A program made the position numbers and the translations under genes. From the NCBI RefSeq assembly GCF_963853765.1, contig NC_088859.1:18538001-18602000 (forward strand): a DNA stretch of 64,000 bases, given 5' to 3'. The stretch's first letter is position 1. Each line of letters starts with the position of its first letter. Of this stretch, positions 8,421 through 11,400 are shown piece after piece. Origin of the DNA: Magallana gigas (Eukaryota). The notes under the pieces were generated by a model. It had not been told where the DNA came from. It saw only the letters and a list, made by a program, of their open reading frames with translations, and did no database searches.

Positions 8421-11400
8421 ATGGAAAGGTGGGTCGGTCGGGTTGCGCTTGTTACCGGAGCCTCGGTGGGGATAGGAGCGGCCATCACAAGGGCTCTGGT
8501 CAAACATGGAATGAAAGTCGTGGGCTGTGCAAGAAACGTTCAACAGATCGAGGTAACATATTGAGTATTTCATGCAAGCTGGAGTCGGCAATGTTATTAA
8601 ATCCTGTGGCTAAAGGGCATGTTGACCCATGGGCGCGCTTGATTTAGCTTAACTAGGTGTACACCAGTGTGCACCCGGTGTAAACATTTTGTATTGTATA
8701 TCAGGTGCAATGTACATGGTGGCAGAAAAGGATGGAGTTTTAACAGAGAATCTGCTCATCAGCGACAATCCGATGCCTTTTTCTGATATAAATGCATTGG
8801 AATAAAGACATTTCAAATTTAACGGCTTTCACTGTACAAAAGACAACATACGCGACTTTTAATTCGTTATATAATTTAAATCATTTGTCAAGTTTACAAT
8901 CATAACATTCGTCCGCCATTTTGGTGTTAAGTGCTACACCCAAACACACATGCCCCTGGCTCGGTGTAGAAAAGTGTTCTTCCGATGTACACCTTTAGAA
9001 ACGCTACATCAATGCAGAACAACACGGTGTACACCTTAATGGAAAATCAAGCACGCCTGGACAGATAAGCTCTAATTTTTTTTTATTAATTGCACCTGCA
9101 CCACTGTAGGGTTTTAGTAATATCAGTGAATACGTGTAGAGAAATTCCGGACATACGAACAATAATACATGTATTGCCTATCGGCTGAGCACTACAAGTC
9201 AACTGCTCATGCAGTACCATTAGAGGGACCATGCCCATGGGCCATTACGCTCACTTGGATTAGGAAACCTTGGAGATAGTTTCTCTTAGTTATCCTAAGT
9301 TGAAGTACGTGATGTACATGTAAATTGAACTCATACATTTTCCATTAAGATCACATCTAAAATTTATTTAAAAAATGAGGTATTCAAGTTTAGACCCCTA
9401 TGGTAATGCACAGGCTTGTGTTTTATATTTGCTGCATTTAATGTGATGTATAATTTTCAGTCAATACGTGATGAACTGAAGGCTGAAAAGGGTCAACTGA
9501 TTCCAATCAAATGTGATCTCACCAAAGAAGAGGAGATCCTGGCAATGTTTAAGCAGATCCAGAAAGATCTAGGGGGTGTAGATGTGTGCATTAACAACGC
9601 TGGACTATCACACTGTGCGCCCTTGCTGTCTGGTAGCACTGCTGACTGGAAAAACATGTTAGATGTAAAGTACAACTTATTTTTCTGCTTCTATTTAAAT
9701 TTATTAAAAGTAATTAGCTCTTGGGTGTTGAATTTNNNNNNNNNNNNNNNNNNNNNNNNNNNNNNNNNNNNNNNNNNNNNNNNNNNNNNNNNNNNNNNNN
9801 NNNNNNNNNNNNNNNNNNNNNNNNNNNNNNNNNNNNNNNNNNNNNNNNNNNNNNNNNNNNNNNNNNNNNNNNNNNNNNNTATAACTAAATAAGTTATCAA
9901 GATCTCCTCCACAAAAAAGGATGATAATATCATGTTAGTCTTGTGTGATATGTATCAAATTAAAAAGTGTATGATAGAAGAATTTTTTTCACAGAAATGC
10001 ATGACTGTATTCAAGTATCAAGGATTTAAACAATCCATTATTGTAGGTCAATGTACTGGGTCTTTGCATATGTACCAGGGAAGCCTTTCAACAAATGCAG
10101 AAAAACAAAGTTGATGATGGTCACATAATTCTCATAAACAGGTAATTGATTTTATATTCATCCAATATGGAGAGGGTGAACATTAATTTTACGTTGTATT
10201 GTACATAAAATATTAGATAAAACTACACTACACCACTGCACTTTAATCACAGGGGGGAAAATTAACATTTTGCTCTAACCATTTAAAACACGTAAAAAGT
10301 GACTTTGTTGTTAGGTTAATATGTATATGAATGATATTTATTTTTAGCATGTCAGGGCACCGTGTAATTCCAAATGCAGCGGGTCATTTCTACTCTGCTA
10401 CAAAGTTTGCTGTATCTGGAATTTTGGAGGGCATTAGGAATGAACTTCAAGAGCTGAATTCTCACATACGGGTTACGGTGAGATATTAACATTTGAATTA
10501 TATACTTTCGAATTGAGATTACATGTGTATCTACATCTTCATATACAGAGAAATATACACATTTTGTTCTCTTTATGATAATATGTAAATCAGTATGCAT
10601 ATACATTCCATGGATTCTAAAACTAATTAAAGAATGAACTCTCAAATACGTTTCCGTTTGTTCAAAGTTTTGAATTTTAATTCATAAGGATTTAAGTAAT
10701 TCTCATCTGTTTATTAGCTGTTTTATCATTTAATTAATCATATTGAGTATATTTCTGCACATGCAGGCTATAAGCCCAGGGATGGCAAAAACAGAATTTG
10801 AAATACGCAATATGAAAAGTAAAGAAGAAGGGGAGAGAATCTATGCAGAATATAAGGTAGATAAATCTATTTCTCCTTGATTTTTTTAACAGTCTGTCAG
10901 TCCAGGGTTAGTGGCTACAGAATTCCAGCAAAGAATGCATAAAAGTCCAGAAGTTGGGAAGAAAATTTGTAGTCACTTTAAGGTAAGTACTGGTAAAATA
11001 AACAGTGTCTGAATTAATGGCATTTACAGGTTTAAATGAATTGTAAGAATCTCCCATTTTACATTTATGTAAAAAAAAGAAGAAGATAAATTATCTTAGA
11101 TGTCTTAATCTGCTTTTGAATGAATTGTAAACATATTACACATGCATCCCCTTTTCAACACAATTTTCACTACCCACCTACCTACCTCCCTCCCTCCCTC
11201 CCTTGTAAATGTAAATGTGAAATGTAAGTGTGAAAATTTATAAATCCCAGGTGAAAGTAATTTTTTTACAGTGCTTGGAAGCAGAAGATTTGGCTGATGC
11301 AGTCATATATGCATTAAGTGCACCAGCACATGTTCAGGTTAGTGTCGTAATTTGGACATTCAAGTATATTCTTTTATTTCAAGAACCACATAACTAATGA

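Follow-up and report, generated by a model that had tools for sequence, protein, structure and literature searches.

Tandem-duplicated, mutually exclusive exons exchange the substrate-binding loop of DHRS11 in the Pacific oyster

The Pacific oyster, Magallana gigas, encodes a DHRS11 orthologue, a short-chain dehydrogenase/reductase (SDR), in which the fifth exon position is occupied by two homologous exons, 5a and 5b, lying in tandem 36 nt apart. The gene is found in a 64 000-nt stretch of contig NC_088859.1 (assembly GCF_963853765.1, positions 18 538 001 to 18 602 000 of the forward strand) that we call the window; the positions below are counted from its first letter. Within a limited RNA sample, spliced transcripts carry one of the two exons or the other, which supports 5a and 5b as a mutually exclusive cluster of tandem-duplicated homologous exons. 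It is probable, in our judgement, that the twins arose by an old tandem duplication and are mutually exclusive, with the short spacer blocking their joining, and that the gene makes two enzymes that differ in their lid.

Exons 5a (10767..10856) and 5b (10893..10982) lie on the + strand, as does the whole gene; each is 90 nt long (30 codons), in phase 0 and open. Both are preceded by AG; the donor of 5a is weak (GTAGAT) and that of 5b is the consensus GTAAGT. The two agree in 53 nt out of 90 and, once translated, in 13 residues out of 30; both peptides keep SPGxxxTEF. A tblastn search of the window with one twin recovers the other (E = 7e-5), and because the same pair recurs at the orthologous place in four other species (see below), the likeness is not a matter of chance. 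The spacer (10857..10892) runs from GT to AG, adds an in-frame TGA if retained, and is proposed to be unspliceably short. A preliminary description of the window had claimed these two homologous tandem exons with valid splice sites and open frames, and the spacer with its stop codon, and the sequence bears it out on each of these points. The twins are flanked by two shared exons, namely exon 4 (10348..10477), which ends ...HIRVT in phase 0, and exon 6 (11272..11337). Use of 5a removes intron 4 (10478..10766, 289 nt) upstream and, downstream, a 415-nt intron made of the spacer, 5b and intron 5; after 5b, intron 5 alone is removed (10983..11271, also 289 nt).

The RNA sample comprised one raw poly(A) run (X20) and three contig runs (X1, X12 and X6), aligned to positions 9880-12400, with joints reported at a threshold of 1 %. 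The junctions that the preliminary description had anticipated, exon 4 to either twin and either twin to exon 6, were all four found, each with GT..AG borders. Exon 4 is joined to 5a at 10767 (joint 10476>10766) at depth 19.2 in X1 and 27.6 in X12, and to 5b at 10893 (10476>10892) at depths 29.9 and 57.8, with two reads in X20. The joint from 5b to exon 6 (10980>11270) has two reads in X20 and depths of 11.7 in X1 and 57.8 in X12. That from 5a to exon 6 (10854>11270) has depth 27.6 in X12 and is seen in X1 only as a loose end at 10856 consisting of the first 15 nt of exon 6; X20 gave 0 reads for either 5a joint. In X12 the two routes stand side by side as a pair of 146-nt contigs, E4-5a-E6 (27.6) and E4-5b-E6 (57.8), unlike only in the middle exon, which is the bubble expected of mutually exclusive exons; the first of these has zero mismatches within 5a. 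By contig depth the share of 5a is about one third in two runs, although this measure is rough. Neither a 5a>5b joint (10856>10893), whose absence had also been anticipated, nor an E4>E6 joint skipping both twins (10477>11272) is listed in the four runs at the 1 % threshold. A run-index query with 5a, spacer and 5b (17 sampled words) matched 0.53-0.71 of the words in RNA-type runs and 1.00 in DNA-type runs, as expected if RNA contains both exons but no words crossing the spacer; by their organism labels the runs come from an oyster.

Several observations weigh against this reading of the pair. First, the sample is small: it consists of four runs, three of them contig sets, which drop rare variants, and the fourth yielding only 18 raw reads, with 5b joints only; X6 gave just two short contigs, both past the stop codon and none over the twin exons. 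Second, a contig of X1 crosses the 36-nt spacer unspliced, at depth 9.6. Third, all six of the six transcript-derived full-length proteins in the cluster listing have 5b; on this ground 5a is the minor form, with which its non-consensus donor agrees. Fourth, protein models of 282 amino acids that contain both exons are on record for several oysters (K1RIX4, C. angulata X3, Saccostrea echinata X3 and the Ostrea edulis gene).

The unspliced contigs of X1 (10827-11078) could reflect pre-mRNA primed internally by oligo-dT, or else a poly(A) end within the intron. One of them continues past 5b into intron 5 and stops, with eight extra A's, at the genomic A8 run 11071-11078, and depth in intron 4 is nil; raw reads of X20 cover 10985-11154 too. 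Farther into intron 5 there is a CT-rich low-complexity run of ccta and ccct repeats (11166-11231), at which reads seem to be cut.

The 282-aa models could be taken to mean that exclusivity is leaky, with occasional splicing of the tiny intron giving a protein with a duplicated loop. Models of this kind, 5a followed by 5b, come from four oyster species, and double inclusion would stay in frame. They (P0337, P0334, P0191 and the O. edulis locus L010, 1-5066) need splicing of an intron of 31-42 nt. Such an intron is below the minimum of about 40 nt in Caenorhabditis elegans (PMC4165533) and cannot fit a criterion of 50 nt between donor and branch point (PMC5740500). The joint it would leave is the one missing from all four runs, no protein of 282 aa occurs among the transcript-derived (Logan) cluster members, and on the structural models a tandem loop between betaF and alphaG would be hard to fit into the compact fold. 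We therefore think occasional double inclusion improbable, and the 282-aa models are probably annotation artefacts.

We compared the orthologous loci of S. echinata, Crassostrea virginica, O. edulis, the pearl oyster Pinctada imbricata, Mytilus californianus and Argopecten irradians. The twins are present in the first four, with spacers of 42, 31, 35 and 35 nt respectively, and the splice sites and open frame of 5a are kept in all five species that have the pair, Pinctada included; M. californianus and A. irradians have one exon 5 at the single locus looked at in each. Compared with one another, 5a copies agree at 19-28 of 30 residues, but a 5a and a 5b copy agree at only 12-18, and at nine positions a fixed difference separates every 5a copy from every 5b copy. 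Since 5a copies thus resemble one another more than they resemble 5b, and given the nine fixed differences, 5a and 5b are two orthologous exon lineages that predate the split of Ostreidae and Pteriidae, which are placed in different orders by NCBI taxonomy. In P. imbricata the intact 5a-type exon, with its AG and GT (L011 9642-9731), lies 35 nt upstream of the modelled exon (P0249); it is an unannotated alternative exon left out of that species' protein model.

Both lineages are under purifying selection. Among true oysters the ratio of nonsynonymous to synonymous divergence (omega) is 0.03-0.14 for 5a (synonymous divergence, dS, 0.7-1.3) and 0.07-0.25 for 5b where dS is defined; dS over both exons ranges from 0.5 to 1.3. 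The pooled ratio pN/pS is 0.21 for 5a and 0.21 for 5b, and the two exons are under equal purifying selection. Neutral decay of 5a in orthologues, named in the preliminary description as a way for the idea to fail, was not seen; 5a shows purifying selection there instead. Between species the exons are 68-89 % identical and the adjoining 90 nt on each side 58-70 %, the level of random 90-mers.

These figures bear on a further interpretation, that 5a is a decaying duplicated pseudo-exon and its inclusion splicing noise. It has some appeal in that the 5a copy of a tandem paralogue (gene 2, described below) is dead and that, in our gene, 5a is the less used of the twins and the one with the weaker donor. 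Yet noise would have to account for a third of contig depth in two runs, and for the low omega and the preserved frame and splice sites across five species, while the introns flanking the twins, unlike 5a, have fallen to random identity. Between 5a and 5b dS is about 1.0, as compared with 0.38 between the tandem genes, and a neutral copy at that divergence would rarely remain open with its SPG..TEF. On the RNA share, the selection on 5a and the random-level flanking introns we reject the pseudo-exon interpretation, to which we give almost no credence.

How is joining of the twins prevented? Both exons are a multiple of three nucleotides in length, so neither the reading frame nor nonsense-mediated decay (NMD) could forbid double inclusion or skipping. 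We propose that 5a and 5b were born of an old tandem exon duplication and that, after exon 4, the spliceosome would take the acceptor of either 5a or 5b. If 5a is chosen, its weak donor would be unable to pair with the 5b acceptor 36 nt away, the distance from donor to branch point being too small; it would then pair with the acceptor of exon 6, and 5b would be removed inside the 415-nt intron. If 5b is chosen, 5a would be removed along with intron 4. The gene would thereby yield two NADP(H)-dependent SDRs of 252 aa that share both the Rossmann core and the catalytic N-S-Y-K tetrad.

Precedents exist for a barrier of this kind. In C. elegans, where the minimal intron is about 40 nt, five clusters of mutually exclusive exons of 3n length have shorter introns between them and are never joined (PMC4165533), and 57 human mutually exclusive exon clusters (9 %) have a donor-to-branch-point distance of <50 nt (PMC5740500). 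The oyster spacer is under this spliceable minimum of about 40-50 nt, a threshold that comes from C. elegans and human and may not be the oyster's. Its sequence drifts while its length in the five species keeps within 31-42 nt; the other introns of the gene measure 206-908 nt, and this contrast points to length itself as the constrained property. In none of the five species does 5a have a consensus donor: it reads GTAC or GTAG.

Exclusivity might instead be enforced by competing RNA structures of the docking site/selector type or by trans-acting factors, with the short spacer incidental. Mechanisms of these kinds are reported for other exon clusters (PMC6071210, PMC3585155), and whatever blocks joining, some regulation of the 5a:5b ratio must exist. 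The interval from E4 to E6 has no RNA structure beyond that of shuffled sequence (z = +0.42), albeit in a weak test, and the flanking introns are not conserved across species; the spacer, drifting in sequence but steady in its short length, points to length as the constrained property. With no excess folding in that weak test and a length-constrained spacer, we reject an RNA-structure mechanism as having little chance of being right. Steric hindrance is the most likely cause of exclusivity, judged by the length of the spacer and its conservation, because 31-42 nt is under the known workable limits and excess RNA structure is lacking.

What the twins exchange can be placed on the enzyme. From start to stop codon the gene spans 8421..11836 (+ strand), with AG/GT at all exon borders, and is a complete SDR gene of seven exon positions that encodes 252 aa with either exon 5. 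Apart from the exons already given, the exon model has E1 at 8421-8552, E2 at 9461-9664, E3 at 10047-10141 and E7 at 11795-11836; a run of N's (9736-9879) falls inside intron 2. A Pfam adh_short match covers exons 1, 2 and 4, and in a family alignment of 56 sequences, headed by either isoform, the SDR signatures vary hardly or not at all: TGxxxGxG (T12-G19), NNAG (N89-G92), the tetrad N114/S144/Y159/K163, and P191-G192-T196. Database entries name the protein DHRS11. The best PDB match of the 5a model is human DHRS11 (1xg5; TM 0.94-0.97, 58 % identity), which is also best by sequence, and the next-best fold match is an insect farnesol dehydrogenase. The gene is a classical SDR of the DHRS11 orthology group.

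In a gapless alignment to the 1xg5 chain, exon 4 corresponds to residues 173-215 and exon 6 to 247-268, and exon 5 must therefore correspond to 216-246. That segment has 31 residues in the human protein, which was solved as an NADP complex, and 30 in the oyster. Taken alone, neither 5a nor 5b has a useful match in PDB or Pfam. The whole isoforms, which the preliminary description had suggested modelling, fold with equal confidence onto human DHRS11: their AlphaFold models have pLDDT 95.0 and 95.3 and are alike in topology, with the exchanged part predicted in both as a strand (185-191) and two helices (198-203 and 206-216) and as the least confident region. In SDRs the loop between betaF and alphaG recognises substrate, and a hinge Pro and a loop Thr contact the nicotinamide (PMC3662788). 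Homology to 1xg5, the two models and that literature together uphold the earlier assignment of the exchanged segment to the SDR substrate-binding loop. The 17 of 30 residues at which the twins differ fall in the end of the betaF strand, the PG...T hinge and the helix-turn-helix of this loop; within residues 188-217 of the 56-sequence alignment only S190, P191, G192, T196, E197 and F198 are conserved. Counted from the translations, acidic and basic residues number six each in the 5a loop (net charge 0); in the 5b loop there are two acidic and five basic residues, along with two His and one Cys (net charge +3).

The two isoforms would plausibly, and in our view most likely, prefer different substrates or close the lid at different rates. 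A bolder proposal is that the DHRS11 gene is a two-enzyme switch older than the divergence of true and pearl oysters, in which the acidic 5a and basic 5b lids give different specificities, one perhaps for steroid-like and the other for isoprenoid or carbonyl substrates, and are deployed in different tissues or stages. We offer this tentatively, as a conjecture with a reasonable but minority chance of being correct. It competes with the idea that the exons are indeed exclusive but that the loops tune cofactor release, lid dynamics, stability, localisation or partner binding instead of substrate choice. In 3alpha-HSD/CR the hinge Pro and loop Thr mainly govern cofactor affinity and product release (PMC3662788), the predicted secondary structure of the two oyster loops is the same, and their clearest contrast, charge, could equally alter surface properties. 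The nine long-fixed differences, however, sit in the helix-turn-helix, which in many SDRs is the part that recognises the substrate (PMC3662788), and this fits two maintained binding surfaces. A tuning role without change of substrate is in our view rather unlikely.

The tandem paralogue, gene 2, lies downstream at 14630-20862 on the + strand and has an open frame of 252 aa with its own 5b (19844..19933), an intact copy whose protein is 80 % identical to that of gene-1 5b. This is its sole usable exon 5: the 5a copy (19716..19806) is decayed: a 1-nt insertion shifts its frame, PG has become QE, there is a TAA stop, and the donor reads GC in place of GT. Products of gene 2 occur among transcript-derived proteins (cluster 3). 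In O. edulis too, the downstream paralogue has only a decayed 5a remnant left (L010 13563-13607); 5a was lost either repeatedly in duplicates or once before the split. Between gene 1 and gene 2 dS is 0.38 overall and just 0.12 in exon 5b, and identity reaches about 85-92 % in the introns adjoining exon 5; within every species the 5b of the paralogue is closer to that species' own gene-1 5b than to the paralogue of another species. The low dS in 5b and this within-species likeness suggest gene conversion or independent duplications in the tandem DHRS11 genes.

We also considered whether the exon pair might be bivalve-wide. In Ruditapes philippinarum two 'isoforms', X1 and X4 (P0199 and P0223), carry different loops, one of which begins AISPGMAKTEF and resembles oyster 5a. 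As they also differ at 11 positions outside the loop, and so might equally be paralogues or alleles, we do not count them as evidence for such a pair. The same holds for a transcript fragment of clam type (P0361) that has this kind of loop.

Both oyster products are already in the databases. XP_011433720 (C. gigas DHRS11 isoform X1) equals the 5b product and XP_011433721 (isoform X2) the 5a product, each at 252 of 252 residues, and C. virginica, C. angulata, O. edulis and Saccostrea have corresponding X1/X2 pairs. These RefSeq isoforms are automatic gene models of the same proteins as the window's two products; the records are silent on exclusivity, its cause, the age of the pair and the part of the enzyme exchanged, and the both-exon models of 282 aa came out of the same annotation pipelines. 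Our literature search turned up no paper on DHRS11, or on any other SDR gene, with alternative or mutually exclusive exons, and nothing on a second version of the loop exon in the DHRS11 of vertebrates. The preliminary description's belief that the pair was undescribed for DHRS11 thus holds for the literature searched, but not for sequence records, where both isoforms of this very gene were present.

The pair is a well-conserved new example of a known splicing device, both of whose products are already in RefSeq. Its closest likenesses are the C. elegans clusters of egl-15 (exons 5B/5A, 14 nt), let-2 (9/10, 30 nt), bet-2, gly-5 and gly-6, which are also homologous adjacent 3n exons, invisible to NMD, with an intron below the minimum and no isoform ever seen with that intron excised (PMC4165533); they differ in phylum and in the genes concerned, and the oyster spacer is 31-42 nt. 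The human clusters under 50 nt (PMC5740500) and the mammalian steric cases (cited in PMC4165533) share the proposed incompatibility of 5' splice site and branch point, although in the classical mammalian cases the intron may be long, with only the branch point near the donor, whereas in the oyster the whole intron is short. In function the nearest parallel is COQ-2 of helminths, annelids and molluscs, in which mutually exclusive homologous exons reportedly alter the part that chooses substrate (PMC7434440). COQ-2 is a polyprenyltransferase, and its switch is reported to have been shown experimentally (PMC7434440); the oyster SDR switch is proposed.

What is new here are the junctions for both splicing routes, the age of the pair, the equal selection on its members, the constraint on the spacer, the structural placement of the exchanged segment and the likely error in the 282-aa models. 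For annotation, the both-exon models are probably wrong, and the Pinctada gene model omits an intact alternative exon. The oyster pair provides a well-supported case of exclusivity through a too-short intron outside nematodes and vertebrates, with a comparative sign of constraint on spacer length. It is also a clean and conserved natural experiment on the SDR substrate-binding loop: at least five species, from two orders of bivalves, have maintained two lids on one catalytic core, and with two ready-made isoforms to express, the range of substrates that mollusc DHRS11 accepts can be tested directly. If the proposed two-enzyme switch is true, it would give a handle on the disputed metabolism of steroids and terpenoids in molluscs.

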